Shown here: piece after piece, positions 2,213 through 24,300 of the stretch
Position numbering within the stretch: position 1 is the first letter of the stretch
Layout: every line of letters begins with the position of its first letter
Origin: Malacoraja senta
Lineage: Eukaryota
Direction of reading: 5' to 3'
Length of the DNA: 64,000 nucleotides
Assembly (NCBI GenBank): GCA_038087875.1
Contig: CM075985.1
Span: forward strand, 40,610,001 to 40,674,000
Program-made: the position numbers and the translations under genes
Notes under the pieces: generated by a model
Told to the model about the DNA's origin: nothing
Databases searched by the model: none
Seen by the model: the letters and a program-made list of their open reading frames with translations, nothing else

Positions 2213-2545
2213 TGGGGCCTGTCCCCACTTAGGCGATTTTTCAGGCAACTACAGGCGACTAGTTTATGGCCACATGCTCACCGGTGGTCGCCGGGAGTAG
2301 TCTCAGTCGCGGAAAAAGTCGTAGTGTCTTACTGGTCACCGCTAAATTTAGAACATGTTGAAAAAAATTTCGGCGACAGTGGGTTTTAACGCCATTGAGC
2401 ATAGCTTGACTTGTCCTGGCGTAGGTGCTGTCGTAGGTTGTCGCCAGGATGACATAAGTTTGTCACTGGTTTTTTCGGCGACCCGCTACGACTATGACAG
2501 TCGCCGGCAGTTGCCCTAAAAAAATCACCAAGTGGGACAGGCCCA
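2213..2545. mobile_element. PIF/Harbinger-type MITE, 333 bp
   Basis: TIRs tggggcctgtccccactt / aagtgggacaggccca flanked by a TAA direct repeat (2210-2212 and 2546-2548); no ORF. Confidence 0.8.
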
Positions 2546-2769
2546 TAAAGAACATGCATTTTAACACATACAAAACAGACAAAAAGGAGGAAGGGACAGG
2601 CAGGGACTGTTGGCGAGGCAGCCAGTGCACCAAAACACGAGGGAAATGGTGGGGATTGCTTAAAGATGTAGCAGGGAATATTTGCTTGTTGTTTTGTGGG
2701 CGGAGGCGAGGTACAAAACAAATACTTTGCATTTGGTTTCACCAAGAAAGACATGGTGAAAAGTAAGGA

Positions 2770-3600
2770 CTTTTAATAGTAAGTACAGCATATAATCCCT
2801 CCAACATTTTTCGCCACCTGCACAGGATCCGACTACTGGCCACATCCTCTCCATCTCTACCACTTTCTGCTTTCCGCAGAGATCGTTTCCCTCCGAAACT
2901 CCCTGGTCACAACTCGTCCCATCACACCCAAACCACCCCCTCCCCAGATACATTCCCCTGCAACCGCACGAGATGCAACACCTGTCCCTTTACCTCCCTC
3001 TCAACTACATCCAAGGACCCAAAGTCTTTCCAGATGAGGTAGAGGTTCACTAGCTTCTCCTCCAACCTCATCTACTGTATCCGCTGTTCCAAACCAGTTG
3101 TCAATTTCTCTGCATCGGCAAGGACCAAGCGCAGGCTCGGCAATAATTTCGCTGAACACCTCAGCTCAGTCCCGTCTTAACGTATCTGATCTCCCGGTGG
3201 CCCAGCACTTCAACTCCCCTTCCCATTCCCAATCTGACCTTTCTGTCCTGGGGCCCTCCTACATTGTCAGAGTGACGCCCAGCGCAAATTGGAGGAACAG
3301 CACCTCATATTTCGTTTGGGTAGTTTGCACTCCAGCGGTATGAACATTGACTTCTCTAACTGTCGATAGCCCTTGATTTCTATCTCCATCCCCTCCCCCT
3401 TTTCCAGTTCTCCCACCAGTCTTACTGACTCCGCCTACATTCTATCTTTGTCCCTCCCCTAACATCAGTCCGAAGAACGGTCTCGACCCGAAACTTCGCC
3501 CATTCCAGAGAAGCTGCCTGTCCCCGCTGAGTTACTCCAGCATTTTGTGTCCTACCTTTGATTTTACCATCTGCAGCATCTGCAGTTCTTTTCTTACACA
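2770..3600 (+). mobile_element. Penelope-like element, degraded 3' part (GIY-YIG region plus terminal repeat)
   Basis: Degenerate match to the GIY-YIG segment at 14460-14780 (tccaacctcatctactgtatccgctgttcc; gtggcccagcacttcaactcc), followed by the terminal block with gaagaacggtctcgacccgaaac. Confidence 0.75.
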
Positions 3601-3744
3601 TGGAGAATCAGTGTGGGGGAATGCTAACATGCAGGGGCCACTTTGATGTTAAGCAAGAACGAGGGTGTTGTGTCACTTGAAGAGCATTAAGGTGGATAAA
3701 TCCCCAGGACAGAGGGGTGTAGTGGACAATAATAATAATTGTTG

Positions 3745-4215
3745 AAAACATTAACGATGCAGTGGTGCTGGTTTCCGGACGGGTGCGATGACGGACGCAC
3801 CACACATCTCTATCCTCCATGGCAGCTGGCAAGCTCCTCTTTTGTCCTCTACACACGCGTCTTCCATCTACGTCTTCAGCATTTGTCTTGATTGGCCGTC
3901 CCGGGTCAAGTCTTCCATGGGTTGGTACCCACAGCACAACCTTGTTTTGCTGGCATTTCTGGGGTGGCGAAGCCAGTAAACCAGCGAGACTCATCCTTCT
4001 CTACGTGATCTTCTCGGTCAGAGGTGGAGGTCTTCCCATAGAGCTGGGCGTTGGTGATGTGGTCACTCCAACTGACAATTTGAACTTTTTCAAGCATTCA
4101 GGTGTAGGTACCAGCGAGAGACATGGGACAGTACTCGAGGGAGTCTATGGCTCACACCCGTACAATAATATGGTCTCTACAGTAACACGGAAGGCCAAAT
4201 ATTCAGGTTTGTACT
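3745..4215 (-). mobile_element. RTE-clade (RTE-X-like) LINE, 3' fragment
   Basis: Minus-strand frames give ...TRMLEKVQIVSWSDHITNAQLYG... and ...VVLWVPTHGRLDPGRP..., resembling the C-terminus of RTE-clade ORFs; frameshifted. Confidence 0.65.
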
Positions 4216-4225
4216 TCAGTAACAA

Positions 4226-4411
4226 GTAGACAAAAAATGCTGGAGAAACTCAGCAGGTGTGGCAGCATCTATGGAGCGAAGGAAATAGGCAACGTTTCGG
4301 GCCGATACCCTTCTTCAGTCTGACGAAGAGTTTCGGCCCGAAACATTGCCTATTTCATTCGCTCCATAAATGCTGCCGCACCCGTTGAGTTTCTCCAGCA
4401 TTTTGGTCTAC
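4226..4411. repeat. Fold-back (inverted) pair of Penelope terminal repeats
   Basis: Arms of about 90 bp (gtagacaaaaaatgctggagaaactcagc... / ...gagtttctccagcattttggtctac) centred on cagtctg near 4316-4322. Confidence 0.85.
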
Positions 4412-4585
4412 CTTCGATTTTCCAGCATCTGCAGTTCCTTCTTGAACAGTGACAAGTAGAGTTCTGCAGGGATCTGTCCTGTGACACTTGCTACTTGTGA
4501 CATATATAAATGACTTGGGTCTTGATGTTCAGAAATTACCCCAGTCATAACAATTAATCAAATAATGATTTTGTTTTTCTTTCAG

Positions 4586-4860
4586 AATATCACTATGTTC
4601 AAGGACAGTTTGGTTGTGAGGTGAACGATCACAGTCCCACTGTAGGGATATTGAAGTTGGCTTTTGACGGAAGATATGCATTTAGTTTTGATAAGGACAA
4701 ACTAAAGTGGACAGTGCATGATCCAATAGCTGAGACCTCCAAAGAGAAATGGGACAAGAATGAAAAAATGAACCGTTATTTCAAGAGCTTGTTAGAAATG
4801 ACTGTGTGGCTCTATGGGATACATACTATGCAATTGGAAAGACATACCTGACCAGAAAAG
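4586..4860 (+). CDS. MHC class I-like heavy chain, alpha2 exon (1-nt frameshift at about 4796-4799)
   Basis: ttttctttcag acceptor and gtgag donor, phase 1/1. Reads YHYVQGQFGCEVNDHSPTVGILKLAFDGRYAFSFDKDKLKWTVHDPIAETSKEKWDKNEKMNRYFKSLLE, then after a frame shift DCVALWDTYYAIGKTYLTRK. Both alpha2 cysteines and the AFDG, SFDK and KW motifs are present. Length is 275 nt, one short of 276. Confidence 0.9.
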
Positions 4861-5157
4861 GTGAGTTCAGACCAAAGGGTGTTGTTTTGTGATGATAGGC
4901 ATTGAGTAATATTTCACTCTGAGGCAATGAGTAATATTATCTCTGACCCAATCATGACAGAGGGAAAGGTCATTTGGCCCATTGAGTCTATGCTAGTTTT
5001 CAATGCAATGTCGAAAAACGGTTCCACACCTCTCTCACAACGTGCACTCAGCTCCCTCGGATTCTCCTTTCATTCAGCTGCATTACGGATAATTTGCAAT
5101 GTCCAACTAACTCACTGGCACGTCTTTGGTATATTGGACAAAACTGGAGCACATGGA

Positions 5158-6200
5158 GTAGGTATGTTACAAAACTTACCTTCAGCGGCGCTGCAGACCT
5201 GTCACTGGCCGTGTGCGCGACTTTGGCGCCTTTGAGGGGGGGCGGGGTTAAAATGCGGTTTTCTCCTGCCTGCCGGAGTTTTATTTTCTCGGGGTGCGGC
5301 TAATGCTGAGGAATTGTTCCGACTGCCGGTCTGTGAATAATGTTTTAAACATCGCTGGACAATTTCAGCGCTGGAGTAAAATAAAAATCCGCTTCTAATG
5401 CCGTGAACGCCGATAAGCGGGACGCATCTCACGTACGGGACACCTAAAGGTAAGCCCTTTATTTTACATATAAACGTGCTGCTTAGGATGACCTTAATCC
5501 AAATTTTACGTTGCGAAAAGGTGATTTAGGCCCCATACAAACCGGCAGTGTTTTTCCTGCCGATATGGGGTTCAAATTCACCGCAAATGCAACGTTCCAA
5601 TCGATCGCGTTACACAAAATCCCACTCGCAAGATGATTTAAATAGCCATTAATTTACGGGATTTAAACGCTAAATTCCTTCCATTTGGCGTATAAATTCA
5701 TGACAATAAGATTAAAAATTATGTTATATTGTGAATCCTTGTGTGAATGTTATTTGGACACTTAGGGTATTTAAAAATGTTAATCTTTTCTTAAGGAATG
5801 GATAGATGTTTAGATCTAGTAATTGAATTTTGTAATTAGCTACAAAATTCGGTAACTATCTAATTATATGCTTTAATTTCAGGTCATCCAAGTAAGATTG
5901 GTTCATATTTGTTTCAGAATGCTTCAATCTAGAATAACTGAAAATGTATTTCAGTTCTCATAATTTTTGAGAAAGTTATAGGCTTTTCACTGTCCTCGAT
6001 CACAGCTTTTGTGTTCAGTCAATGGAAAAGCAATAGGGAACAAAATGCTAATTTCCGAGTATTTAAATGGCCATACATTTTTTAATACTTAAGGTATGAA
6101 AGTGAATTAGATGTCAAATTGAACTTCTTTTTATGCTTTATCTGATGGGATAAATTGCAGACTTGATTTTTAAAATCTCAAAATGTTGTAAGATTGCTAC
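5158..6200. mobile_element. Non-autonomous DNA transposon with imperfect TIRs (possibly hAT)
   Basis: Left end gtaggtatgttacaaaactt vs reverse complement of right end gtagcaatcttacaacattt (15/20 match); flanked by ATGGA on both sides; no ORF. Confidence 0.65.
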
Positions 6201-9200
6201 ATGGAAGAAGCCAACTGAGTCATAAGGTCAGAAGTGATGGGTGCAGCATTAGAACATTCGGCCCATCAAGTCTACTTCGCGATTCATTCATGGCTGATCT
6301 ATTTTCCCTCCTAACCCCATTTTCCTGCCTTCTCCCCATAACCCCTGACGTGCATGCTAATCAAGAATCTATCTATGCCTTAAAAATATTCATTGACGTA
6401 CTCCAAAGCCTTCTATGGCTAACAATTCCACAGATTCACCACCCTCTGACTAAATAAATTCCTCCTCAACTCCTTCCTAAAGGATTGTCCTTTAATATTG
6501 TGACTATGACCTCTAGTCATAGACTCTCCCACCATTGGAGACATCCTCTCCACATCCACTCTATCCAAACCTTTTCACTATTTGGTATGATTCAATGAGG
6601 TCCCCCCTTATTCTTCTAAACTCTAAACGCCGTCAAATGGGCATCATATGTTAACCCATTCATTCCTGGGATCATTCTTGTACACCTCCTCTGGACCCTC
6701 TCCAGAGCCAGCACATCCTTCCTCAGATATGGTTCCCCAAATTGCTCACAATGCTCCAAATGTGCATTGACTGGCACCTCAGCATTACATCCCTGTCTGA
6801 CAGGGAGAAAGTGTCATTGATGTCTTTCATATTACTTAACCATGGATTTTCTTAACCACAGTTGACAGCCCCTAATGGGATTGCATGTCTATCACACATC
6901 TCTATAGAGCAGAGCGTTAAGCTTCGAAGGGCAACATTTACACGAGTTGTGCAGGCAAGTGTTTTTTTTGCGCAAAGAGAGTTTGATACCTAGAATGTGC
7001 TACCAGGAGTGGTGGTAGAGGAAGACATGATAATGGTGCTTAAGAATGTTTTGGACAGGCTTGTGGATATGCAGAGAGAATGTACAAACTCCGTCCAGAC
7101 AGCACTCTAGTCAGGATCGAACCCGGGTCTCTAATGCTGGAAGACAGCCACTCTATCGCTGTGCCACTGTGTTGCCTTAGTTTAACTTGGTATCCTCTTT
7201 GACATGGACATTGCAGGCTGAAAGTCCTGTTCTTGTGCTGTACTGTTCTATGTTCTACATATTCTCATTGGACAGGGCAGGGATACGTTTTCCACTCCTC
7301 CAGTCTCCATGTTGAGTACTTCCTCCCAGTTTAAATCTGATTCAATTAGTCAATCCATTTCTCCCTCCCCTCTTCCTGCCCTGCTCCCCATTCTATATTT
7401 TGAAGTAGTCATTCCCTTTTTCGCTCCCTGGTCTGCTCTACTATCCCCACAAATGTCCTCTACTTTACTATCTTGGTGCATGCAACATCTATCCATTTAC
7501 CTCTTCCCTTCCCACTGTCCATAGACCCAGGCAGTTCTTCAAAGTGAAACGGCGTGAAACACTTGCACTTCCAGTCAAATCTACTGCATTCGTTTTTCAT
7601 GACGTAATCTTCCACATTGCATCAATGAAACAAATTGAGTGGCTGCTTTCTGGAGAACCTGCATTCAATCCATGGGACCTTCTAAGATTCCTAATTCCTG
7701 CCACTTTAATTCTCCATTCAACCCACCATGATCCATCCATCTGTATCTCTTACACTAGGATAACAAGGGTGAAAGTAACCTTGAGGACCAACAACCCAGC
7801 TTCTGCCTGGATATGTTGCAGCCTTTCAAACTCAATTTCACATTCAACGAGTTGCATTCCCTGTCGATAAAAGAACTGGTCCTTTCAACTGTTAAGTTGA
7901 AGTCAGAAAGAACTGATACAAGAAGTATGAAGAAGGATTCAAAGCTGAAACATTACGTAACCATGCCTTGCAGATGCTGCCTGAGCCACTGAGTTACACC
8001 TGCACGTTTTTGTGGAGGGTTTTAATTACAGTTAAGTTACCTACCTGCAAAATCAGAACAGCGTGACCTACTTGAGTACTGCATTATGTGCTGCATTTTA
8101 TTTAACCCTGTTTAGTTTCATGCATGCAAAGATGCAGTGAAATGGTTTGGATGGAACAGCAGATGCTGGACACCCCATCCCCATCGCACCCCAGAGATGC
8201 TGCCTGTCCCGCTGAGTTACTCCAGCATTTTGTGTCTATCTGCTTTGAAATGGTTGTTCTGCATGCTCTCCAGTCAAGTCATACTGTACATCAGTTCAAT
8301 TCGTCCTCTTCTGGAACAGCTCGCAGAGATCCACCACATTCCAGGACTATCTTGCAGCTTCCAAGTCTCTGAAAAGTCTGATTTTGCCCCAAGGAAATAC
8401 CCAATTTCTCATTTTCTCATGTCAAGGACCAATGTCATAACAGCACTGGATTGATGAAGTAGTGGCGCCTGCCTCAGTTTACAAAATCCACCTGCCACAA
8501 AATCCCACTCGCAAGATGATTTTAATAGCCATTAATTTACGGGAATTAAACGCTAAATTCCTTCCATTTTGCGTATAAATTCATGACAATAAGATTAAAA
8601 ATCATGTTATATTGTGAATTCTTGTGTGAATGTTATTTGGACACTTAGGCTATTTAAAAATGTTAATCTTTTCTTAAGGAATGGATAGATGTTTAGATCT
8701 AGTAATTGAATTTTGTAATTAGCTACAAAATTCGGTAACTATCTAATTATATGCTTTAATTTCAGGTCATCCAAGTAAGATTGGTTCATATTTGTTTCAG
8801 AATGCTTCAATCTAGAATAACTGAAAATGTATTTCAGTTCTCATTATTTTTAAGAAAGTTATAGGCTTTTCACTGTCCTCGATCACAGCTTTTGTGTTCA
8901 GTCAATGGAAAAGCAATAGGGAACAAAATGCTAATTTCCGAGTATGTAAATGGCCATACATTTTTTAATACTTAAGATATGAAAGTGAATTAGATGTCAA
9001 ATTGAACTTCTTTTTATGCTTTATCTGATGGGATAAATTGCAGACTTGATTTTTAAAATCTCAAAATTTTGTAAGATTGCTACATGGAAGAAGCCAACTG
9101 AGTCATAAGGTCAGAAGTGATGGTGCAGCATTAGAACATTCGGCCCATCAAGTCTACTTCGCGATTCATTCATGGCTGATCTATCTTTCCCTCCTAACCC

Positions 9201-11363
9201 CATTCTCCTGCCTTCTCCCCCTAACCCCTGTCGTGCATGCTAATCAAGAATCTATCTATGCCTTAAAAATATCCATTGACGTACTCCAAAGCCTTCTGTG
9301 GCAAACCATTCCACAGATTCACCACCCTCTGACTAAATAAACTCCTCCTCAACTCCTTCCTAAAGGATTGTCCTTTAATATTGTGACTATGACCTCTAGT
9401 CATAGACTCTCCCACCATTGGAGACATCCTCTCCACATCCACTCTATCCAAACCTTTTCACTATTTGGTATGGTTCAATGAGGTTCCCCCTTATTCTTCT
9501 AAACTCTAAACGCCGTCAAATGGGCATCATATGTTAACCCATTCATTCCTGGGATCATTCTTGTACACCTCCTCTGGACCCTCTCCAGAGCCAGCACATC
9601 CTTCCTCAGATATGGTTCCCCAAATTGCTCACAATGCTCCAAATGTGCAATGACTGGCACCTCAGCATTACATCCCTGTCTGACAGGGAGAAAGTGTCAT
9701 TGATGTCTTTCATATTACTTAACCATGGATTTTCTTAACCACAGTTGACAGCCCCTAATGGGATTGCATGTCTATCACACATCTCTATAGAGCACAGCGT
9801 TAAGCTTCGAAGGGCAACATTTACACGAGTTGTGCAGGCAAGTGTTTTTTTTGCACAGAGAGAGGTTGATGCCTGGAATGTGCTACCAGGAGTGGTGGTA
9901 GAGGAAGACATGATAATGGTGCTTAAGAATGTTTTGGACAGGCTTGTGGATATGCAGAGAGAATGTACAAACTCCGTCCAGACAGCACTCTAGTCAGGAT
10001 CGAACCCGGGTCTCTAATGCTGGAAGACAGCCACTCTATCACTGTGCCACTGTGTTGCCTTAGTTTAACTTGGTATCCTCTTTGACATGGACATTGCAGG
10101 CTGAAAGTCCTGTTCTTGTGCTGTACTGTTCTATGTTCTATATATTCTCATTGGACAGGGCAGGGATACGTTTTCCACTCCTCCAGCCTCCATGTTGAGT
10201 ACTTCCTCCCAGTTTAAATCTGATTCAATTAGTCAATCCATTTCTCCCTCCCCTCCTCCTGCCCTGCTCCCCATTCTATATTTTGAAGTAGTCATTCCCT
10301 TTTTCGCTCCCTGGTCTGCTCTACTATCCCCACAAATGTACTCTACTTTACTATCTTGGTGCATGCAACATCTATCCATTTACCTCTTCCCGTCCCACTG
10401 TCCATAGACCCAGGCAGTTCTTCAAAGTGAAACGGCGTGAAACACTTGCACTTCCAGTCAAATCAACTGCATTTGGTTTTCATGACGTAATCTTCCACAT
10501 TGCATCAATGAAACAAATTGAGTGGCTGCTTTCTGGAGAACCTGCATTCAATCCATGGGACTTCCTAAGATTCCTAATTCCTGCCACTTTAATTCTCCAT
10601 TCAACCCACCATGATCCATCCATCTGTATCTCTTACACTAGGATAACAAGGGTGAAAGTAACCCTGAGGACCAACAACCCAGCTTCTGTCTGGACATGTT
10701 GCAGCCTTTCAAACTCAATTTCACATTCAACGAGTTGCATTCCCTGTCGATAAAAGAACTGGTCCTTTCAACTGTTAAGTTGAAGTCAGAAAGAACTGAT
10801 ACAAGAAGAATGAAGAATGATTCCAAGCTGAAACATTACGTAACCATGCCTTGCAGATGCTGCCTGAGCCACTGAGTTACACCTGCACGTTTTTGTGGGC
10901 GGTTTTAATTACAGTTAAGTTACCTACCTGCAAAATCAGAACAGCGTGACCTACTTGAGTACTGCATTATGTGCTGCATTTTATTTAACCCTGTTTAGTT
11001 TCATGCATGCAAAGATGCAGTGAAATGGTTTGGATGGAACAGCAGATGCTGGACACCCCATCCCCATCGCACCGCAGAGATGCTGCCTGTCCCGCTGAGT
11101 TACTCCAGCTTTTAGTGTCTATCTGCTTTGAAATGGTTGTTCTGCATGCTCTCCAGTCAAGTCATACTGTACATAAGTTCAATTCGTCCTCTTCTGGAAC
11201 AGCTCGCAGAGGTCCACCACATTCCAGGACTATCTTGCAGCTTCCAAGTCTCTGAAAAGTCTGATTTTGCCCCAAGGAAATACCCAATTTCTCATTTTCT
11301 TATGTCAAGGACCAATGTCATAACAGCACTGGATTGATGAAGTAGTGGCGCCTGCCTCAGTTT
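5614..11363 (+). repeat. Tandem duplication, 2,883-bp period (5614-8480 and 8497-11363, 16-nt filler 8481-8496)
   Basis: Constant offset of 2883 at both ends and at paired ORF-track entries (6194/9077, 7309/10192, 7544/10427, 8124/11007); scattered substitutions between copies. Confidence 0.95.
6280..6790 (-). mobile_element. CR1 LINE, degraded 3' fragment (duplicated at about 9163-9673)
   Basis: Minus strand reads like a CR1 RT C-terminus/3' end (MDRVDVERMSPMVGESMTRGHSHNIKGQSFRKELRRSLFSQRVVNLWNGLP in the duplicate copy). Confidence 0.75.
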
Positions 11364-11588
11364 AAGTTTTTCTGTTTCAAGATTGTGATCGAACCCTCGT
11401 CACTGGAACTGTGCCGCAGTGCCATCCCATTACGTATCCGTCTCAATTATCTTTCAACATGCTGGAATCACTTTTTTAAAAAATCCTTTTTAGACTTTTT
11501 TCCTGAATTGTTCAACATAAACAGTTATGCTACAACAGTTAACCGCAGCTACCACTTAGTTCCAGAGACGTAACAACACAAGATATAG

Positions 11589-11774
11589 TGTTGGAAGAAT
11601 GATCAAACTCACACATAGTGGTTAGAATCCATAGTCTATTATTAGTAACTCTGCAGAAGAAACACAGGGTGCTTTCTTCTCAGCGTGCTTACTACTAGTC
11701 TACCAGAGAGAGAAGGAGAGAGCTCTCTAATAAGCATGTGGGCAGAGCCACGGTATGAGTGACACTAATATACA
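11589..11774 (-). mobile_element. Probable solo LTR, 186 bp
   Basis: Begins tgttgg and ends ataca (TG...CA); flanks tatag / gatag (4/5 match, candidate 5-bp TSD); no internal coding sequence. Confidence 0.5.
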
Positions 11775-11799
11775 GATAGGCACAGGGGTAAGTTTAGGT

Positions 11800-12105
11800 T
11801 TATTATTCTCACATTTAGTTTCGAGGTACAGCATGGAAATAGGCCTTTCGGCCCACTGAACGTGTGCTGACTAACGACCACCCAAACATTAGTTATATCC
11901 TACAAACTAGGGACAATTTACAGAAGCGAAAACACTTAGAAACCTGCACGACTTTGAATGTGACGGAACTGGAGCACCCGGAGATAACTCACATGGTCAC
12001 AGGGAGAATATATGAACTCCATATAGACAGCACCCATTGTCAGGATTGAACTTGGGTCTGTGGTACTGTAAGGCAGCAACTTTGCCGCTGCGCCACTGTG
12101 CTGCC
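11800..12105 (-). mobile_element. tRNA-derived SINE (same family as 1632-1908)
   Basis: Reverse complement of the SINE head (ggcagcaactttgccgctgcgccactgtgctgccc) and tail. Confidence 0.75.
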
Positions 12106-13409
12106 CATGTACTGAGGTACAGTGTAAAGCTTTGTTTTGCATGCTATTCAATTGGATGCGATGACAACATACATATATATGATCAAGTCAAACTCAAGTA
12201 CTGTAGGTAGGGCAAAGGGGAAGGTACAGATTGCAGAATATAGTTCTCAGCAATGCAGCACACCAATTCCATTAGATAAGGGTTTTGACACGAAACGTGA
12301 CACATTCCTTCTCTCCAGAGATGCTGCCTAACCCGTTGAGTTACTCTAGCATTTTGTGTCTATCTGAGGTTTAAACCAGCATCTACAGTTCCTTCCTACA
12401 TAGTTCCATAAACAAAGTCCACTGTCTGTAATTGGGTAGTGGTCAATTGGGCAGTACCCTAGCTTATGGAACGATCATTCAGAAGCCTGATTTTCTCCTT
12501 GGTTATCAAGTATCCGAGTAACTAATTTGGTCCTCAAACCTGCCCACCATTCAATATGACCATGGCTGACGTTCCTCAGGCATCAACTCCTGTTCGGTGT
12601 CAGTTCCTCGTTGCACTCAATTCTCAATCTTTCAAAAGATTAACTACCGCCACATTAACTACTTCCAATGATTTTGTCTTCACAAATCTCTGGGGTCGAG
12701 CATGCCAGAAAATGACCACACTCTGCAAAAATAGATTTTGTAAATAAATGACTGGTCCCTTTTATCTCGTATTGAAGAGGAGTGGAAATACGGCCAATTT
12801 TCAGATTTTCCCCTCCGCTAATTGGCCCTCATTTCGTAACTTGTCAATTATTTATTATTGTCAATAATATGTCGTAGTGAAAGGATTTGGCGTTGGTATT
12901 AGTTTATTATTGTCACGTGAACTGTGATATAGTCTAAAGTTTGTCTGTGTGTTATCCAGTCAGATCATACTACACATGTGCAATCAAGCCATCCACAAGT
13001 AGAACAGTGCAAAGAGAACAATATTCAGAGTGCAGAATTAGAATATCATAGCATTACAGTTACAGAGAAAGCGCAGATCAAAAAGAGTTGCAAGGATCAC
13101 AATGAGATTGGTTGGAAGATCAGGACAACACCTTATCTTAAATGAGAATCATTCAGTAGTCCAATAACAGTGGGGAAGAAGCTGATTCTGAATTTAATGG
13201 TACGTGCTTTCAAACTTCCTTGTGTACTGTCTTAACAGGGAGCATACGATCCCTTTTAAACCACGTGGTTGGTTGATGGTGACGAAAGAGGCAAAATGGG
13301 GTAGATGTAGACAGTAACCTGGTTGTTGTTGTAGACTGAAGAATATTTTGTGGTGGGTGACTGTGCAAGTTTTACTGAAGATGAAAATAACCATCTTCCT
13401 GTCTTGTAG

Positions 13410-13676
13410 TTTCCCCTGAGGTCACTCTCACTGCCCGCCCTGATGATCATTCAGTCCTGTACTGCACTGTATTTGGATTTTACCCACCGGCCATCAATGT
13501 CAGCTGGTTGCAGAATGGTCAACATGTCTCTGAGACCAAATCTTCTGGGGTCATACCCAACAACGATGGAACATATCATCTAAAGTCTGTCCTTGAGTAT
13601 GATCCGTATGATGGGAAACAGTATTCCTGTCATGTCGATCACAGCAGCCTGCCAGGTGGGAAGACCATCATCTGGG
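13410..13676 (+). CDS. MHC class I-like heavy chain, alpha3 (Ig C1-set) exon
   Basis: cttcctgtcttgtag acceptor and gtaag donor, 267 nt, phase 1/1. VSPEVTLTARPDDHSVLYCTVFGFYPPAINVSWLQNGQHVSETKSSGVIPNNDGTYHLKSVLEYDPYDGKQYSCHVDHSSLPGGKTIIW, with C1-set motifs LxC..GFYP..W, PNxDGTY and YSCHVxHSSL. Confidence 0.95.
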
Positions 13677-14217
13677 GTAAGAACGTTAAATATTCTTTCG
13701 TAGATAATCATTATCTTCTGTTGTTTCCATTTTAATCATTGTGACTACATCCCATATTCCAAGATGCTTAAACTTTCTTTGTTTAGTGGTGTTGCTCTAA
13801 GCAATCACGTAATCAGCACCCACTCTCCACATGAGCAGAAGACTTTGTCAACAGTAAATTTATCAAAAGTAAATATATAACTAATATACAAGGAAGGAGT
13901 ATTTCGGATTCTCAGTGGTGGAACTGAAATCCATGAAAGGTATATATAAATAAAAAATGAATCTTTCCTCATGATGTGATTAACAGCAAGGCACTGGGGG
14001 AGTACATGCCCCCAATCCGAATCAATGGTTTGAAGTGGAAATTATTGTGAGCTTCATGTTCCTTGGCATGAATATATCCAATATTCTGTCATGGACTGAC
14101 CACATAGCTAAGGAGGCACACCGACACATCTACTTCCTCAGGAGACTGAGAAAACTCATCATGTCTCTGGCGACTCTTGCAAATATCTATATATGCCGCT
14201 AGAGAAAGCATGTTGTT

Positions 14218-14784
14218 AAAGAAGGAACTGCAGATGCTGGAAAATAGAACGTACACAAAAATGCTGGAGAAACTCAGCGGGTGCAGCAGCATCTATGGAG
14301 CGAAGGAAATAGGTAACGTTTCGGGCCGAAACCCTTCTTCAGACTGATAGGGGATGGGGAGAAGAAAGGAAAAAAGGAAAAAGGCGGAGGAGGAGCCCGA
14401 GGGCTGGGGGAGGGTAGGAGACAACCAGATGGCTGATGAAGGGGAGGGGACAGCAAGGGCTAGCAGAATTGGGAGAATTCAATGTTCAAGCCCCCAACAT
14501 GTAGACTGCCCAAGCGGAATATGAGGTGCATTTCCTCCAATTTACGGTGTTGCTCGCTGTGGCCATGGAGGAGACCCAGGACAGAGAGGTCAGATACGGA
14601 ATGGGAGGGGTAGTTGAAGTGCTGAGCCACCGGGAGGTCAGGTTGGTTATTGCGGACCGACCGGAGGCGTTCGGCGAAACGATCGCCAAGCCTCCGCTTG
14701 GTCTCACCGATGTAGATCAGCTGGCATCTAGAGCAGCGGATGCAATAGATGAGGTTGGAGGAGATGCAGGTGAACCTCTGTCGC
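14218..14784 (-). mobile_element. 5'-truncated Penelope-like element (GIY-YIG C-terminus plus terminal repeat) with 16-bp TSD, nested in a Rex1 fragment
   Basis: ORF 14460-14894 contains FTCISSNLIYCIRCSRCQLIYIGETKRRLGDRF (GIY-YIG); direct repeat gagaaagcatgttgtt at 14202-14217 and 14785-14800. Confidence 0.9.
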
Positions 14785-16909
14785 GAGAAAGCATGTTGTT
14801 GGGTTGCATCACATCTTGATTTGGGAACTGCACTGCCCAAGACTGCAAGAATATACAAAGAGTTAAAGATCATCACACAGGCCAGACTTCCCACTATTGA
14901 CTCAATCTACACCAGGTTGCCTTGGTACACCCCGGTCATTCCTCCTTCCTGCTCCCATCAGGCAATTGGTGCAAAAAGTTGAAAATATGCACTGCCAGAC
15001 TCAGGAACACCCCTTTTCCATCTGTTATCAGGCTTCGGAAGGGTCCTTCCATAATGTAGGTTTAATGCCCGATTCACCTCTACCTCATTGCACATTGAAC
15101 TGATGTGTTACAATGCTGAGAACAATATTCTGTACTTTGTATCCTCCTCTTTGCTCTATCTATTGTTTTTGAGTTTGTATTTATGTATAGTCTTATCTAA
15201 TTTGTTTCTATAGCATGCAAAACAACCTTTGCACTGTATCTTGAAACATCTGGCATTAATAAAACTAAACCTAATGAAGTAAGTTCCGCAAGTTACAGTT
15301 TCTGCAATGAAAAATATAACTGCTTGACAAACAGCGATCGTACTAGTTTGATTCCAGGTATGCTGCACTAACCTTCGTAAGTGCTCACTTTTGAAGATTC
15401 CCTCGAACAATGCACAACTAAGGAATCTGATGTTTCACTGTGAAGACTGATGACATACTCCAGAACTTAATTTCCAACCTATCTATGTATCATCAGCAAT
15501 CTAGGCTACAGCACCGTCAGTCCCTTCATCTGCTCTTAATACCAACGATAAGTAGTTTATTTCTTGCATTGATTCCCAACCTGCAGTTGCAGTTTCCCCA
15601 ACCTGAACACTCCTTTAAGACAACTCTCTGCTTGCTCTTAATTGTTTTTCCATTCATGCTAATTATTACCCCAAATGTCATAAGCCATGTGCCTTTGCAT
15701 CGCTTGATCAGATATCTTATGAAAATCCAGATATTGTGGCGACATATGGTGGTCAGGCCACTTATTGCTAGAACCCTCGTCAGGGGAGCTGGGACTATCA
15801 CGTGACAGGGTTTTGGTGGGAGTTGGTGACGAGTCAGTCGCCAGTCAACTGGTTTGCCCGATTGCGGCAGGAACTTTGCTCAAGTCCTTACTAAACGCGC
15901 GTGTGTGCCAAAACTATATTTCTTTTAAAAAAAAAGATTTGTTGATGACGTTTGGATCTCTACAATATATTGTATTTCTTTTGTTTCTCATTCCAATTTT
16001 GTTACCTATTCTGCTTTTCCATCATTTTGTTTTTGAATTTTAGGCTTTTCACACCTGCAAACTACTGCTGCTTGAATATACACTGTCTACGGGTTCCTGT
16101 TGCATTTTCAAAGAATTCTAATCAATTTCTCAAACAAAGTTTGAACAAGGGCCCCAAAACGAAACCCAAGATGGACACACATTGCTGAAATCATTCAGCT
16201 GGTCAGGCAGCATCTCTGGAGAAAAGGAATAGGTGATGTTTCGGGTCACGCTCCTTCTGACTGAGTCCATGCTCACCAGAGATGCTGCCTGCCCCGCTGA
16301 GTTACTCCAGCATTTTGTGTCTATCATGTATATCCTTTCCACTCACTGGTTAGCACATAACAAAACCTTTTTCACTGTAACTCAGTACACATGACAATAA
16401 AATAAACTGAAGCTTTTGTGTAAATCAATATCCGCATCTCTTTATTTCTACAATGTTCCTGTTAATGCCTTGTTAATGCACTTTATTGTTCTGTTATTAA
16501 TAAAATGTTCTGCCATTACTGAAGGAAATCCAGCATTTTCCCCCAAACAGATGTTAGATTATATAGGGTTAAAGCTTTCTGCTTTCAATTCGTCTTCTTT
16601 CATGAATTAAGCTGTGGCTGTCATGGTGCCATAGATCATAGAGTTGTACAGAACATATATTGTCCCTTTGCCATGCTGCAGAACTCCGTGATTCAAAACA
16701 CCACATCATTTTATATACCTTGAAAAGTGCCAAAGACAGACACAAAATGCTGGAGTAACTCAGCGGTTAGGTAACATCTCTGGAGAAAAGGAATAGATGG
16801 CATTTCGGGTCGAGACACTTCTTCACCCTGAAGTCTTCAGACAGTGCCAATCCATTTAGCTGCACAGCTTAACAATTGATTTGTAAAATTATGCATTCTT
16901 ATTTTTCAG

Positions 16910-17017
16910 AAGGAAATAGGAAGAAAGACAAGCACATTGGCCTTATTGCCGTGTGTGTGCTGATATTGCTGGCTATTGTCTTGGCAGTAATTGTTTGGTG
17001 GAGAAAAAAGAGGAGAG
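16910..17017 (+). CDS. MHC class I-like heavy chain, connecting peptide/transmembrane exon
   Basis: ttcttatttttcag acceptor and gtaag donor, 108 nt, phase 1/1; (E)GNRKKDKHIGLIAVCVLILLAIVLAVIVWWRKKRR is a hydrophobic span followed by a basic stop-transfer. Confidence 0.85.
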
Positions 17018-17254
17018 GTAAGATGGAAAAATCGTGATGCACATTTGCTAATAAAGGTATTGAAGAAATGATTGATCTCAAGTAGGATAACGCAGCAGCT
17101 ACACTTGAAATGCCTTGGCAGTCACCACTGTCAACTAGCCGTTGTGCTGTTGTTAAATGTTTCTGATAATCAGATATTTGAAAATTGTGAATTCCTTGTA
17201 AAAAGAAAAGTTTAACATTATGGATTCACTGCACCAAATCATAGAAATATAATT

Positions 17255-17950
17255 GAGTCATTGAAAAGTACAGCATGGAAGCAGTCCTTTCGGCCCATCG
17301 AGTCCATGCCAACCACCTGTTCTCGTGAATTATATCTCATTGCACCTTCTCATCCAGTCACCCACCCACTAGGGGCAATTTACAGTGGCCAATTAAACTA
17401 TAAACGGACACATTTTTGGGATGTGTAAGGAAGCCGGAGCCCCTGGAGGGATCCAATGCAGTTACACGGAGAACGTGCAAACTCCACATTGATGGCACAA
17501 GAGGTCAAAATTGAACCCGGGTCTGTGTCGCTACGAGGCAGCAGCTCTACCAGTTATGACACTGTGCTGCTCTGTTGGGGGCTCGCACTGTTTATGATCC
17601 GTCAGCTACGAGGCAGATTGGTTGCAGTTTAACATTTACTAGTTTTGTTTAGTTTAATTTAGAGATACAGTGACGAAACAGGCCCTTCGGCCCATCGAGT
17701 CTGTGCTGACCAGCGATCCCCGCACATTAACACTATCCTATACACACACACACACCAAGCCAATTAACCTACATACCTGTACGTCTTTGGAGTGTGGAAG
17801 GAAACCTTATATCTCGGAGAAAACCCACGCAGGTCACGGGGGAAACGTACAAACTCTGTACAGACAGCATCAGTAGTCGGGATCGAACCCGGGTCTCCGG
17901 TGCTGCAAGGGCTGTAAGGCAGCAACTCTACCGCTGTGGCACCATGGTCG
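17255..17950 (-). mobile_element. Two adjacent tRNA-derived SINE copies (about 17255-17575 and 17650-17950)
   Basis: Both are reverse complements of the SINE family seen at 1632-1908. Confidence 0.75.
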
Positions 17951-18814
17951 CCACTGAGGCCACAGTTACTGGAAGTCTCAAAATTAAGTAGTGGTAGGAA
18001 AAATGGTTCAAGGTGGAATGAATGAGCAACAACATGACAGGTGGACTGCAATGTTAAAGGGCAGCGCGGAGCCAGAGACCTGAATTAAATTCCAACATCT
18101 GTGGAGTTTGCATGTTGTTCCTGTGGCCAAGTGGTTTCCCCAGGTGCTCTGGTTTTCTGCCACATCGCCAAAACATGGTTTGGTAAGTTAGTTGTCCCCT
18201 AGATTGTGCATGATACAATGTGGGGAGAGCTGATGAGAATGTGGGACAAATGTAGGATTAGTGTACATGAATGGTTGGTGCAGATCAGTGGGACAAAGGC
18301 CATGTTTGTATATTTCCATGACTCTTTATGATGTAGAAAGATGCTGACTATTTTTGAATTATAAGATTGGAAAAGACTGTGAGGGACGGTGCTAGAGTAA
18401 CTCAGCAAGTCAGGCAACATATAGGTGACATTCTGGTTCGAGACTCTTCAGGCAAATTAAAACGGTTATTCCTCCGCTTAAGTCTGATAGTAGTGTGCAG
18501 TTGCACCTCAACAACTGACTTGCTCAACAAGTGCCCCAATGAGTTGAATTAAAGTATGTTTGGAGTAACATGCAGCAGTCCTTAAAATCTACAATTTCCC
18601 AAATCCCAAGAGAGCTGGATGATCAGGGATTTGGTGTAAATTCAAAGTCATCTATATCACTGGTTTCTTGCCTGTGATCACACTGTTGTAAGAGATATTT
18701 TAGCGATGAATTGCAGTTCACTTTACCCCTGTGTAAAGGAGTTATTGAGATAAATATTGCATCATAACAAGTGGAAGGGAAAGGCAATGTAGGATTTAGA
18801 GTTTGTACGTAGTG

Positions 18815-19110
18815 CAGCATGGTAGTGCAGCTGGTAGAACTGCTGCCTCACAACGCCAGAGACCCAGGTTCAATCTGGACCTCGGGTACTGTCTACGTGG
18901 AGTTTGCACGTTCTCCTTGTGACTATGTCGGCTTCCTCAGGGAGCTCCGGTTTCCTCCCATATCACATAGATGAGCGTGTTTGTAGGTAATCAGCCTCAG
19001 TAAATCACCCTGACAGTGCAGGGAGTGGATGGGAATCTATTAAGAATAGGCGATTGCTGGTTAGTATGGATTTGGTGGCACAAATGGACTGTTTACACAC
19101 TGTATCACTG
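18815..19110 (+). mobile_element. tRNA-derived SINE
   Basis: gcagcatggtagtgcagctggtagaactgctgcc...cccaggttcaatc head plus the central block. Confidence 0.7.
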
Positions 19111-20656
19111 TTTTCAAGAGAGAGTTAGATTTAGTTCTTAGGGCTAAAGAGATCAAGGGATATGGGGAAAAAGTCGGAACGTAGTACTGATTTTGGATGA
19201 TTAGCCATGATTGTATTGAATGGTGGTGCTGGCTCGAAGGGCTGAATAGCCTATTCCTGCACATATTTTTTTACGTTTCTATCTTTCTATTAAATAAGCT
19301 AAATTGGAAGTCAGAAGGTATTGACTGATGCATCTTCAAGCCAGCTGTAAATGTCATAAATTGTGAGAATTGATTGCAAATGTGATACAATATTATAAAC
19401 AAAACTTGGTGATCAAAATGACAAGATGGATGAAGAGCAGAGTTTTCTTTGAAATAACAGATGTGCTGCTTTTCTCGAGCACTTGGCCTTGGTTGTACAA
19501 TATTTCCCTTTCAAAATACAATGTTCACAGGCACTGCTGGTCTGAGACACCACTCAGCAAGTATATTTCCTGAAACGGTGGTTCTGCTTTCATGGTATCA
19601 AGATGTCTAGCAGCTCGAGCACCCAGATCAACCAACCAAGATGCCATGTTGAAACTAGTCCCCTTTTCCCTGCAATTGACCCATATCTCACTGAACCATT
19701 CCTATCTACAGTATGTACCTGTCCAAGTGTGTTCTAAATGTGTTTTAAGTCCCTGCCTCAACTACTTCCCCTCGAATGTTGTTCCATATTTCCACTTCTT
19801 CTGGTTTCGAGTAACTAATTTTCCTTCAACTTAAATCTAAGTCCTCTGTTTCTTGCTTACACAAGGCTGGTTAAAATATTCTGTGCATTCAATCTATCTA
19901 TGCTCCTTGATTTTATAAACCTCTATAAGATCACCCCTCAGCCTCTTGAATGCCAAGGAATAAAGTCCAAGCATTCTCATCCTCTCCCTGAATCACAGGC
20001 CCTGTTAATGACATCCTTCCAATAGTGGAGCGACCAAAACTTAACACAATACTCCAAATGTGGCCTCACCAACATCTTGTACAACTGTAGCAGAACATCC
20101 CAACTTTTTTATCCAGTACCTTGACGGCCAGAGAAGGTTGTGCTGTGAGGAGGAAATGTCATGTTATTGATGTTCCTGATTATTCTGTTCTATGTGCCGG
20201 GCCATTTTGACTTTGCCCCATTTTACTTTGTGTATGATATTGTACAAGATTTGTAATCACACCTCCCAATTGACTAAAATTATCTTAATTAACTAAATGC
20301 CTAATATGTTATAAGGCCCAATTAGGCATTTAGTTCAGTAGGATAATTTTCTGTGGCGGGTAGAAGATGCAGTTTTTATTACACACTATGTGGTGTGTGC
20401 CTGGAATGTACTGCCAGGGATGGTGGCGTTTGGGGTGCAGCTTCGTGGATGCAGGGGCTGAAGGGACATGAATCATTTGCAGGCAGGTGCTGCCTAACTG
20501 GTGTCTGTCCGACTGATTGGGAAGCATTTGAATGGGCTCTGATCGTCAGGCATTGAATACTTCCAGTGACACTATTATGCTGATTTCCCAGAAGATTACG
20601 ATGGCAGAACAGGTCCTTCGGCCACCAATGTTTGTGCTGAATATGATGAAAATTAA

Positions 20657-21170
20657 GGCAGAGTGGCGCAGCAGAGAGAGCTGCTGCCTCAGAGCGTCAG
20701 AGACATGGGTTCAATCCTAACCTCGGTTGTTGGCTGTGTGAAGTTTGTATATTTTCCCTGTGACCGCATGTGTTTCCACTGTGCTCCAGTTTCCACACAC
20801 ATACCAAAGATGCCAGGGTTTATGGGTTAATTGTCTCTGTAATTTAACCCTAGTGTGGATGCGAAAGTTGGATAACATAGAACTTGTGTGAAAGAAACTA
20901 ATTGGAGGAATATTATGTTTTTTGTTTAGTTTAGTTCAGAGACATAGCGTTGAAACAGACACTTCAGCCCACTGAGTGTGGACCAACCAATGATCACCCA
21001 CGCATGCTAGGGACACAAGACAATTAACCTACAAACCTGCATGTCTCTTTTTGTAATGTGGGAGGAAACTGGAGCACCTGGCGAAAACCTGTGCAGTCAC
21101 AGCGAGAAGGTACAAACTCCGTAGAGACAGGACCCGTAGACAGGATCAACCCAGATGTCTGGTGCTGTGC
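20657..21170. mobile_element. Two SINE copies in opposite orientation (about 20657-20890 on +, 20925-21170 on -)
   Basis: Head ggcagagtggcgcagcagagagagctgctgcc on +; reverse-complement copy follows. Confidence 0.65.
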
Positions 21171-21328
21171 CATTATATCTGGAAGGAAGATGTTATGTGG
21201 AATAAATCATCAGTTGAAGCAAATAAACTAGTTGCATCATTTTGAGCTCTGTCCTCTGCGAATGGACTACTGCATCTTTTGTCTATTTTCTATTTCACAG
21301 TTGTCTAATATTTAATTTCCCTCCTCAG

Positions 21329-21369
21329 ATTATAAAACTATTCAACCAAACCAGAACGTGCACTGCTAA
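21329..21369 (+). CDS. MHC class I-like heavy chain, probable terminal cytoplasmic exon
   Basis: aatttccctcctcag acceptor, phase 1 compatible with the TM exon; (D)YKTIQPNQNVHC then TAA at 21367-21369. The exon is short, so the assignment rests on splice phase, acceptor quality and the YxxPhi motif. Confidence 0.65.
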
Positions 21370-24300
21370 CCTATCGCTGAATAGAAGATTTCATGGATGT
21401 GATTGAAATGCAGGATCTGAAATATATCGAAAGAGTTAAATTAAATTTACTAAACATGACAGTATTTCTTAATAGACTGTCCTGCATTTGTACACATTAA
21501 CGCTATGTTGCAATTTTTGCTGATCACAGCTGATCTGACTTAGGCCTCAACTCCTTTACTGTACTTCTTCCACATAGGATACAATCCCCTGTTATTTTAG
21601 AATATATCCTATTTATGTTTAAATATCTCCAATGTTCTAACCTCCTTGGTGTCAAAATGCAGCTCTGCAAAATGGTTGACCTGTCTATGCTATGTTCTCC
21701 AATGTAGAAGAGGCCACATTGTGTACACTGAATGCAGTGGACGTGGTTGGACGCGGTGCAGCTGAATATCTGTTTTCCATGGAACTGTCTTCTCCCTTTG
21801 TTTCCATTTTCCACCACACATTATCCATTAATTCACCACCCCATCATGCCTCTTTGATACCCTCATAAGGTTAACTCTGGTTTTCGTCAACTCCAAGGAA
21901 TACGGAGCCAACGATTTCAGCCATTCGTGGTAAGGCAACACTTGCTTATTCCAAGAATCTCTTCTAGCTGATATCCAATATTAATATATCCTTACTTAAA
22001 TCTGAGAACCAAACTGTACACAGTGCTTCTGATATATTCTTAGCAACATCATGTACCATAATTACAATAGTAACCTACTTTGAACGCCAATATGCTAATC
22101 ACCTGCTTTGTGTGCTGCATCTACCTGGCGGCTTTTTTTTGCACCTTAAGCACTTGAATCTCTTGCACTCTACTCATTTGCAATCTCACTCCATTTAGAT
22201 AATAGCTTCCTTTGAATCACTCTTATCAAAGTGTGCGAGCACATATTTTCCAGTATATTAAACTCCATTTGCCAGTTTTATGTTCATCTAACAAAGAGTC
22301 GTGGAGCCATATAGCATGGAAACAGGTACTTCAGCCCAATGCTCCAAGTTGAACAAGATGCTACATCAAAGTTTGTCGCATTTGCCAGCATGTGGCCCAC
22401 ATTCCTCTCAACATGTTCTATCGATGTACCTGTCCAAGTGCCTTTTCAATGTTGTTATTCTACCTTCTCTGTCAGCTCATTTCATACACCCAGTAACCTC
22501 TGAGTGGAAATGGATGCCTGTCAGATTCCTACTAAATCTTCCTCCTCACCTTAAACCTGTTTTTGCTGGTTCTTGATTACCCTACACTGGGTAAATGCAT
22601 TAGTGCATTCCCCTGATCTATCGCCCTCATGATTTTAGATAGCGCTATAAGATCACCAATTAAAAGGTTTCAATTATAGATAGTGAGATGTTGTGGTTAT
22701 TTCCATCAAGAATTATAGACTAAAGAAAGGCCAGTAGATGTACTTGGTCAAACAGAATCTGTGGAGGCAAATGGCAAAAACCAGCATTTCAAGTCAAGGC
22801 ACTGCCTTAGAATTGAAAGAGAGGATGGGACGATTCTAACAGTTTGAAGGAGGAATGGGGCAGAGGCTGGTAAGTGGCAGGTGAAATCTTTTGGGGGGGG
22901 GTGGGGATGATGGGCAGATGGAGCAAAGTTGATGTAGGGGTGGTTGTGGGAGAACAAATGAACACCAGTGGTGTCGATAAGCTGAAATGTGAAAACTTAA
23001 TATACCATGAAGCTACCCAGGTGGTATTTTGTTTACAATTTTCAGTGCACAAGGTGAACGACAGACGGGTCAATGTGAGAGTGGGAAGGGGTGTTAAAAT
23101 ACCACACAACAGATCTCACGATGATCTTTGTTTCAAAGCGTATGTGCTCTGCAAAATGGTTGACGTCTAAGCTAGTTTCTCCAAAGTAGAGGACAACAAT
23201 GTGAATGCTGAATGCAGTGGAGAAAGTTGAAAGAGGTGCAAGTGAGCCTCTGTCTCACTTGGAAAGTTTATACTCCTGTTGTTCACCTCTTCCTCCTCCT
23301 CTCCTACCTGTTTCCATCTACTCATTATCCTCTCCCCACTTGGTTCTATTTTTAAGCTACCAGCCTCTGTCCTATCCCTCCCTGATTGCTATATATTGGC
23401 AATCCATCCTCTTCCCTAACTGGTGCAGGTTATTGTCCCTATTTGTGACATAAACCACTTGTCCCAATAATTTTGCTTGAGCCATTAAATGCTTTCAGTC
23501 TTCTGTTTTTAGATGCCATTAGCTAGTCATTATTGGATAGAATGTATGTTGTTTCAACACTGCATTTAGTTTGAGACTCAGCACCAATAAATTTTGTTAC
23601 ATAATGCTAGGTTATTTGATGGTCAAATTCTTGATTGTCAGTACTTTAAAAATTTCTAATCTAATGCAAATAACTTATCCATAAGAATATAAAATTATCC
23701 ACAGTGACTGGTGGTACAGTGATCATGTTCATTTTATGTGGCTGGTCTGGCACAAGTGCTGCTCTTGAGATTTTGCCTGATAATAGTTGCCTGCAGAATG
23801 TGCCCGATGACTAGACCATTGCGTATAAGAATGTTTTTAATAGATGGGCAGTAAATCCAAGTAAACGCATTGCATTGCACCCTGTATGATAGTGGTTTCA
23901 TTTTGTAAAGTAAAGCCAAGATATGGTCAATTAATATGCAAGGGACACAATTAAATTGTTGTTAAGAAAATGTATTCCCTCCATTTATTTGCAACAGCAT
24001 CAATCACAGTTATCTTCCGTCAAAGTTGATTTTGTATTTTCTAAAGAAAGAATGGAACAAAATGATCAAAAATGAATTGGCAGTCAAAGTAATACAAGGT
24101 TGTAGTGAAGACAAGTGTGTAGGAACAGGCCACTCTGCCTATCCTGCCAATACTGGTGCATATGGTCCACATGAGCCTCTTCCCACCTTATGCGATCTGC
24201 AACATGGTTGGCAAGTCTATTCTGGATTCTCCAAAGTAGAACCGACTGTTCTTTTCTCTTTTGCATTTGCCCAGCCTTCCCCTAAATGCAATTAATTGAT

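Follow-up and report, generated by a model that had tools for sequence, protein, structure and literature searches.

The alpha2, alpha3, transmembrane and cytoplasmic exons of a class I gene

The window (the whole 64,000-nucleotide stretch of Malacoraja senta DNA that was analysed) contains four exons of an MHC class I heavy-chain gene on the + strand. Their positions, and that of the first intron, are as follows.

4586–4860, + strand: alpha2 exon, skate UGA; 275 nt, acceptor cag/AA, donor AAAAG/gtgagt
4861–13409, + strand: alpha2-alpha3 intron; 8.5 kb, aligns collinearly with its counterparts in Amblyraja and Rhinoraja
13410–13676, + strand: alpha3 exon (Ig C1-set); 267 nt, phase 1-1, intact
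16910–17017, + strand: exon for the connecting peptide, transmembrane helix and RKKRR stop-transfer signal; 108 nt, phase 1-1, aligned to skate UGA proteins
21329–21369, + strand: cytoplasmic exon, D-YKTI-QPNQNVHC followed by the stop codon TAA; aligned to skate UGA proteins

All four exons have canonical AG/GT borders, with splice sites intact at 8 of 8 positions, and the alpha2-alpha3 intron carries an internal 2.9-kb tandem duplication. The alpha2 exon matched Pfam MHC_I at 41.4 bits (cut-off 28.3) and the alpha3 exon matched C1-set at 3e-20; these domain matches are far beyond chance. The alpha3 domain shares 90–93% amino-acid identity with the skate proteins. Exon sizes and phases are those of the UGA orthologues, with the alpha2 exon at 275 nt in the window vs. 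276 nt in Amblyraja and Rhinoraja.

The first-pass annotation had proposed four phase-compatible exons over this span and the retrieval of alpha1 from upstream. The exons and the span stand, with their AG/GT borders; phase compatibility does not, because the 275-nt alpha2 exon ends in phase 0 and alpha3 requires phase 1. In positions 1–4585, tblastn with six relatives detected neither the leader nor alpha1. Both would lie upstream of the window, which would then hold exons 3 to 6.

A missing base breaks the alpha2 reading frame

The alpha2 exon carries two linked defects, both overlooked in the earlier gene model.

4795–4800, + strand: frameshift site, one base missing after 4797 (DNA alignments with Amblyraja and Rhinoraja)
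4849–4851, + strand: premature stop (TGA) in the upstream frame (ORF 4621–4851)

At the site the window reads GAA-ATG, vs. GAA CAT G in Amblyraja and GAA AAT G in Rhinoraja. The alpha2 codons run in one frame from 4588 to 4797 and in a frame shifted by one base from 4800 to 4859, and residues 90–147 and 152–179 of the structure 9ch4_A match these two frames. The one-base deletion renders the exons phase-incompatible as assembled. The last 20 alpha2 codons, DCVALWDTYYAIGKTYLTRK, which include the disulphide cysteine C164, are readable only in the shifted frame; the upstream frame meets the TGA nine bases short of the last alpha2 base (4860). A frameshift in the A6 run at 4763–4768 was ruled out, since the 9ch4 and skate alignments place it after 4797.

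By reading, no alternative in-phase GT donor lies upstream of the stop, and no splice choice puts both alpha2 halves in one frame. Independent short ORF fragments, with or without the frameshift, were looked for and gave no candidates. The assembled copy lacks a full heavy-chain ORF by virtue of the deletion and the TGA, a result that bears on function, not on descent. Its truncated product would be missing C164, alpha3 and the membrane anchor, and no UGA protein would be possible. The gene model at 4586–21369 needs a frameshift flag.

The gene belongs to the UGA lineage

The top PDB match of the window exons was 9ch4_A (alpha3, 3.4e-35, 50/87 identical; alpha2, 6.2e-19), with 50–57% identity over the aligned parts of alpha2 and alpha3. 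This entry is titled 'Crystal structure of shark nonclassical MHC CLASS I, UGA' (released 2026-03-18). It was also the best match listed for the AlphaFold model of the Amblyraja orthologue (Z 28.7, 58% identity, 268/268 residues aligned). In the tree the Stegostoma protein P0158 stands in for 9ch4, to which all 268 residues align with scattered mismatches (E 6.7e-170).

Maximum-likelihood analysis with IQ-TREE placed the window gene inside the skate, batoid and UGA clades, each at 100/100. This UGA clade stood apart from a sister lineage (100/100) and from the remaining class I clades, and a quick tree built besides this careful run is cited for the same UGA placement. The nearest relatives are the shark UGA 9ch4 and the orthologues of Amblyraja radiata (XP_032898133.1), Rhinoraja longicauda and Leucoraja erinacea (XP_055521885.1). 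With them the window gene shares its clade (100/100), exon sizes and phases, L159, L167, K146, W147 and Y171, a YxxPhi tail and a collinear locus, and it is 92% identical in amino acids to the Amblyraja protein over the parts present. It differs from them by the one-base alpha2 deletion with its premature stop and by S rather than F at position 143.

The locus is collinear with those of Amblyraja (L001) and Rhinoraja (L002) through the introns. Nucleotide identity is ~90% with Amblyraja and ~83–91% with Rhinoraja in the introns, and 93–97% in the exons. GPR139-like genes lie nearby, as they do on the Leucoraja contig. The relatives have one UGA orthologue per species and up to three (Pristis), with UGA on two contigs in Leucoraja.

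A 2025 review (PMC12562908) names UGA and describes it as CD1-like, lipid-binding and present in sharks and rays as a single or low-copy gene. UGA is a low-copy, MHC-linked non-classical class I lineage common to both groups. Literature searches on 9CH4, UFA/UGA and shark CD1-like structures returned passing mentions and no primary UGA paper, and the terms UFA and UDA and the accessions were absent from the supplements of PMC10751288. UGA is nonetheless already known: it is named, its structure is solved and its skate orthologues are in public annotation. As a discovery the gene carries little weight; the useful points are corrective.

The description of the gene as non-classical class I was borne out by the UGA clade (100/100) and by 9ch4, and the IQ-TREE phylogeny places it outside the classical clade. 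The label 'unassigned lineage' has to be dropped, as the gene falls squarely in UGA (PMC12562908; 9ch4). Membership in an already characterised lineage is what the first-pass annotation itself had set as refuting novelty. We conclude that the gene is very probably the rajid skate positional orthologue of UGA, represented by exons 3–6, with a proposed CD1-like working and a copy that is broken as assembled.

The lesion is recent or an assembly error

The four exons show no further stop or damage, which suggests that the lesion is young. Relative to Amblyraja, dN/dS is 0.38 overall (alpha2, 0.21; alpha3, 0.28) and dS is 0.09, equal to the intron divergence. Intact splice sites together with a dN/dS of ~0.4 leave two options for the break, a recent origin or an error of assembly. 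If the ancestral codon was AAT, as is probable, the deletion would be an A4-to-A3 run-length change.

That the gene is an intact, working UGA whose missing base is an assembly or consensus error is a serious prospect, if somewhat short of even. The lesion is single, the 20 codons past it remain conserved (2 differences from Amblyraja) when read in the shifted frame, and the low dN/dS of alpha2 and alpha3 (0.21–0.28) and the retention of splice sites, cysteines and YxxPhi tail count in its favour. The site would be a short A run if the ancestor had AAT, as Rhinoraja does. The window also has seven runs of N, and near-identical duplicated blocks bordered by N, suggesting an imperfect assembly. 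A run of 3–4 A, however, is not a typical error hotspot, and on the window's own branch non-synonymous changes (7, among them F143S at a groove position otherwise conserved as hydrophobic) outnumber synonymous ones (3). On balance we slightly favour a genuine lesion, either a null allele or a pseudogene of very recent date, over an assembly error.

It is improbable that the window holds a dead extra duplicate with an intact UGA elsewhere in the genome. Leucoraja, with UGA on two contigs, and Pristis, with three copies, offer precedents, but Amblyraja and Rhinoraja each have a single locus, with which the window aligns collinearly across introns and downstream region, and the window's branch (0.04) is no longer than those of the relatives.

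We consider it unlikely that the deletion is both real and fixed and that this skate species has just lost UGA. In that event the species would be a naturally occurring knockout for a CD1-like lineage conserved in every examined shark and ray, and could serve in cartilaginous fish as a loss-of-function case for a presenting molecule of CD1 type; F143S would then reflect ligand binding that was relaxed or altered before UGA was lost.

The gene set against other class I lineages

Membership in a new, undescribed chondrichthyan class I lineage is barely credible. The automatic names of the relatives are generic (e.g., 'F10 alpha chain-like') and the literature searches described above gave no primary paper, yet the gene nests at 100/100 in the clade containing Stegostoma P0158, nearly identical to the PDB UGA chain, and is itself at 50–57% identity to 9ch4 over the aligned parts, and UGA is already named. 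The proposal is refuted unless the PDB title is wrong.

A classical (UAA) gene or a UAA-derived UBA gene is the least tenable reading and is refuted by the tree: Y7, Y59, R84, K146, W147 and Y171 are retained in the lineage, but it forms a clade different from the P0061 group, whose 4/4 members keep Y7, R84, W147, Y159, W167 and Y171, identity to the shark class I structure 6lup (a structural match of the Amblyraja orthologue model) is 32%, the full anchor set with W167 is missing (L159, L167, S143), and L159, L167 and F/S143 are fixed with one orthologue per species (three in Pristis), unlike a polymorphic locus.

UDA reportedly keeps eight of nine invariant anchors and is present in chimaeras. 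In the UGA gene three anchor positions are changed, and identity to PDB 8kcv ('UDA01') is 31%, the tree being one without a named shark UDA. UEA is said to be a large multigene family, restricted to sharks and absent from rays. Skate, sawfish and stingray genomes carry one to three UGA orthologues each, and the gene was rejected as a UEA member; UEA is multicopy (PMC10751288).

Groove residues are lineage signatures

When the frameshift is allowed for, the window gene has S143, K146, W147, L159, L167 and Y171 as first listed, together with C101 and C164, the latter in the shifted frame. Because of the missing base, the first-pass residues past ~161 came from the wrong frame; by chance, L167 and Y171 are also what the correct frame gives. 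L159 was found in 15/15 and L167 in 14/15 UGA sequences. These residues are signatures of the UGA lineage and not peculiar to the window copy. Position 143 is S on the window's own branch and F in the other three skates.

Relative to the classical peptide-terminus anchors, the UGA groove shows T143 to F (S in the window), Y159 to L and W167 to L, and the lineage retains Y7, Y59, R84, K146, W147 and Y171. The suggestion that the anchors are partly lost thus proved sound, with peptide-terminus anchors partly replaced by hydrophobic residues. A non-peptide ligand is the accepted reading for the UGA lineage; what does not survive is L159 and L167 as an oddity of this gene, as both are lineage-wide.

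The cytoplasmic tail and a proposed CD1-like working

The window tail carries YKTI (YxxPhi) and a terminal Cys. The motif is present in 12/15 aligned UGA proteins in forms such as YQNI, YQTI, YENI and YNAV. Batoid UGA tails extend nine residues past YxxPhi and end in Cys, whereas the five shark tails that carry the motif end at it. A tail motif of this type, YXXZ, is found in CD1 (PMC11481681). The window gene thus has the CD1 tail motif, a resemblance confined to function.

Through its C1-set alpha3, an intact UGA chain would associate with beta2-microglobulin, and its groove would have three classical anchors replaced by hydrophobic residues. Its YxxPhi motif is of the kind that sends CD1b-d through endosomes, so far as trafficking may be predicted from a motif. 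The hydrophobic groove and the YxxPhi tail together lead us to propose CD1-like sampling and display of lipids. UGA is reported to bind lipids in the review, which cites a 'personal communication' of unpublished structure and mass-spectrometry data (PMC12562908).

UGA compared with CD1, chicken YF1 and a sister elasmobranch lineage

The CD1 molecules of mammals, birds and reptiles resemble UGA in lipid binding (reported for UGA in PMC12562908), hydrophobic groove replacements, a short tail with a YxxPhi motif for endosomal sorting and a beta2m-type alpha3. They show no specific closeness in sequence or fold: Pfam MHC_I scored above its cut-off and MHC_I_3, the other Pfam model of the class I family, below, and no CD1 entry was present among the 50 structural matches listed for the Amblyraja orthologue model. 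CD1 membership was rejected on these grounds, and UGA-CD1 orthology is undecided even for the authors of PMC10751288. In both sequence and fold, CD1 is more distant from the UGA protein than are class I proper, chicken YF1, MR1 and ZAG.

Chicken YF1*7.1 (PDB 3p73, 9eb2–9eb6) was the second-best structural match among those listed (Z 25.2). Like UGA it is class I-proper with a hydrophobic groove, and it presents lipids or lipopeptides; at 30% identity, it represents an independent avian lineage.

The sister elasmobranch lineage (P0017, P0164–P0174; automatically named 'MR1-like') joined UGA at 99/96, and in several species the two share contigs. Both have L159 and a hydrophobic residue at 143. 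They are ~38–40% identical, and the sister lineage differs in having F7, H59 and R146, in keeping W167 and in being without N86. We infer that it is possibly UFA.

Assignment of the window gene to UGA

The window is repeat-rich vertebrate DNA with seven N runs. Four + strand exons of a class I gene, all with canonical borders, were delimited:

4586-4860, +, alpha2 exon (275 nt), borders tttcag/AATATCAC ... AGAAAAG/gtgagt; Pfam MHC_I, 41.4 bits (cut-off 28.3)
13410-13676, +, alpha3 exon (267 nt, phase 1-1), borders ttgtag/TTTCC ... TGGG/gtaaga; Pfam C1-set, 3e-20
16910-17017, +, connecting peptide and transmembrane exon (108 nt, phase 1-1), borders tttcag/AAGG ... AGAG/gtaaga
21329-21369, +, cytoplasmic exon, ctcag/ATTAT ... 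TGCTAA

The span and domain order of the first-pass annotation are right, because the exon borders and the Pfam matches agree. No leader or alpha1 exon was detectable within window positions 1-4585.

When the first 70 alpha2 residues were run with HMMER against 1.84 billion representative proteins, three close matches came back, a Leucoraja erinacea protein (93% identical) and two Pristiophorus proteins (75 and 71%), and all remaining matches were at most 45% identical to the query. Relatives of Amblyraja radiata XP_032898133.1 (P0135), all with automatic names, were found by word-indexed search in skates, sawfish (three copies), manta, stingray and seven shark species. The conceptual product of the window gene is 92% identical to the Amblyraja protein and 90% to those of Leucoraja and Rhinoraja.

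The AlphaFold model of P0135 (pLDDT 81.8) was compared with solved structures. The top match was 9ch4_A (Z 28.7, 58% identity, 268/268 residues aligned), from the entry 'Crystal structure of shark nonclassical MHC CLASS I, UGA' released 2026-03-18. Chicken YF1*7.1, chicken BF2, 6lup (shark classical, 32% identity), ZAG and MR1 followed, all at Z 24-25. The Stegostoma protein P0158 matched all 268 residues of 9ch4 with few mismatches (E 6.7e-170), and therefore stood in for it in the trees. In a 41-row IQ-TREE analysis (LG+C20; ultrafast bootstrap/SH-aLRT support), the window gene fell inside skates (100/100), within a batoid subclade (100/100) and a UGA clade (100/100), and a quick 61-row tree gave the same picture. 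The sister of UGA (99/96) is a second lineage from sharks and rays (P0017, P0164-P0174), which is, we infer, probably UFA; UFA is also mentioned in PMC10751288. The gene had been left without a lineage, but the 9ch4 match and the phylogeny place it in an already characterised one, UGA. Sequence and fold place UGA in class I proper, apart from CD1.

The Amblyraja (L001, CM021389.1) and Rhinoraja longicauda (L002) loci are both collinear with the window. Identity to Amblyraja is 95-97% in exons and ~90% in introns, and to Rhinoraja 93-95% in exons and ~83-91% in collinear blocks. GPR139-like genes downstream of the UGA exons correspond to neighbours on the Leucoraja contig. The window gene is the positional orthologue of the UGA loci in Amblyraja, Rhinoraja and Leucoraja, in a further rajid species distinct from these.

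A one-base deletion in alpha2

From the acceptor, the alpha2 frame reads ...KEKWDKNEKMNRYFKSLLE, then MTVWLYGIHTMQLERHT, and ends at TGA 4849-4851. A one-base shift of the frame yields DCVALWDTYYAIGKTYLTRK, which runs to the donor and matches 9ch4_A residues 152-179 and skate proteins. The exon is 276 nt in both A. radiata and R. longicauda, and DNA alignment with these exons showed that a single base is absent from the window copy (GAA-ATGAC, against GAACATGAC, E-H-D, in A. radiata and GAAAATGAC, E-N-D, in R. longicauda). If the ancestral codon was AAT, the change would be one of run length, from A4 to A3. No in-phase alternative donor exists for alpha2, and its two halves cannot be joined in one frame by any splicing. 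As assembled, the product would stop within the alpha2 helix, without C164, alpha3 or a membrane anchor. The exons had been called phase-compatible through an out-of-frame reading; the first-pass observation was largely right, with the frameshift missed.

Because all splice sites are intact, a second stop is absent and conservation persists in the codons 3′ of the deletion, the lesion must have arisen recently, as a null allele or young pseudogene, or else reflect a fault of the assembly. In the comparison with Amblyraja, dS (0.09) matches the divergence of the introns, and dN/dS is 0.38 overall (0.21 in alpha2, 0.28 in alpha3). With Rhinoraja as outgroup, synonymous and non-synonymous changes numbered 3 and 7 on the window branch, 8 and 9 on the Amblyraja branch, and 7 and 16 on the Rhinoraja plus root branch, numbers too small to demonstrate relaxation. 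A search for independent sequence bearing on the deletion found none. We lean slightly towards a real lesion over an assembly error.

Groove residues and cytoplasmic tail

The classical anchor columns were tabulated clade by clade, with 15 UGA sequences. Y7, Y59, K146, W147, Y171 and both alpha2 cysteines are kept in UGA. L159 occurs in 15/15 and L167 in 14/15, and both are therefore lineage signatures; they are present in the window gene, as had been noted, but are not oddities of one copy. Residues past ~161 had been read out of frame, although L167 and Y171 also hold in the true frame. At position 143, 13 of the 15 carry F, L or M, and the S143 of the window gene (TTC to TCC) arose on its own branch.

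The tail of the window gene is RKKRR-D-YKTI-QPNQNVHC. A YxxPhi motif is found in 12 of the 15 aligned UGA proteins; it forms the very C-terminus in all five shark proteins carrying it, and in batoid tails it is followed by nine residues, the last a Cys. CD1b, CD1c and CD1d recycle through endosomes by means of such a motif (PMC11481681). UGA is conserved across elasmobranchs and combines class I architecture and a beta2m-type alpha3 domain with hydrophobic replacements at three anchor positions; lipid binding by UGA is reported in the review PMC12562908. UGA may thus recycle through endosomes and might display lipids to T cells in a CD1-like manner.

Other features of the window

Read-through of the alpha3 donor (13677-13735) gives GKNVKYSFVDNHYLLLFPF and then a stop. 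Leucoraja model XP_055486429.1, which has no transmembrane region, ends in an almost identical peptide. The read-through could represent a soluble form made by conserved intron retention, or merely an annotation artefact common to both.

Neighbouring genes, repeats and duplicated blocks were as follows:

58443-59309, +, GPR139-like receptor ORF of the rhodopsin family (Pfam 7tm_1), with 87% identity to Leucoraja XP_055521888.1
36164-37223, -, second GPR139-like copy, broken across three reading frames, 42-63% identical to the Leucoraja protein
6199-8481 and 9082-11364, 2.9-kb tandem duplication in the alpha2-alpha3 intron, 98.1% identical, period 2883
25622-28314 and 30467-33153, two N-bounded 2.7-kb blocks, 98.4% identical
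38014-42263, -, LTR-retrotransposon remnant, G+C-rich, whose long gag-pol ORFs encode 656 and 529 aa
56310-57990, LINE-type reverse-transcriptase ORF (361 aa; RVT_1, 7.5e-32)
14460-14894 (-), 21524-21817 (-) and 3098-3343 (+), related repeat-family ORFs with the common motif CxxCxxC...YIGE...PVAQHFN..PSHS

The receptor frame is open only from a GTG at 58524, and its N-terminus may therefore be damaged; the second copy is probably a pseudogene. NCBI Leucoraja models LOC129716032 X1-X4 run the class I gene and a GPR139-like receptor together, in what looks like a read-through mis-annotation.

The intronic duplication has a single matching stretch in the Amblyraja and Rhinoraja introns. Both 2.7-kb blocks, bounded by N runs 25266-25621, 28316-28617, 30312-30466 and 33154-33536, match one stretch of the Amblyraja locus (93533-95153) and may reflect either genuine duplication or an assembly/haplotype artefact. 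The LTR remnant carries RVT_1, RNase H, integrase zinc-binding and rve domains and adjoins the N run 42513-43332. The longest of the repeat-family ORFs had no Pfam match, and one copy lies a short way 3′ of the UGA stop codon. The LINE-type ORF has many copies in the Amblyraja UGA locus.
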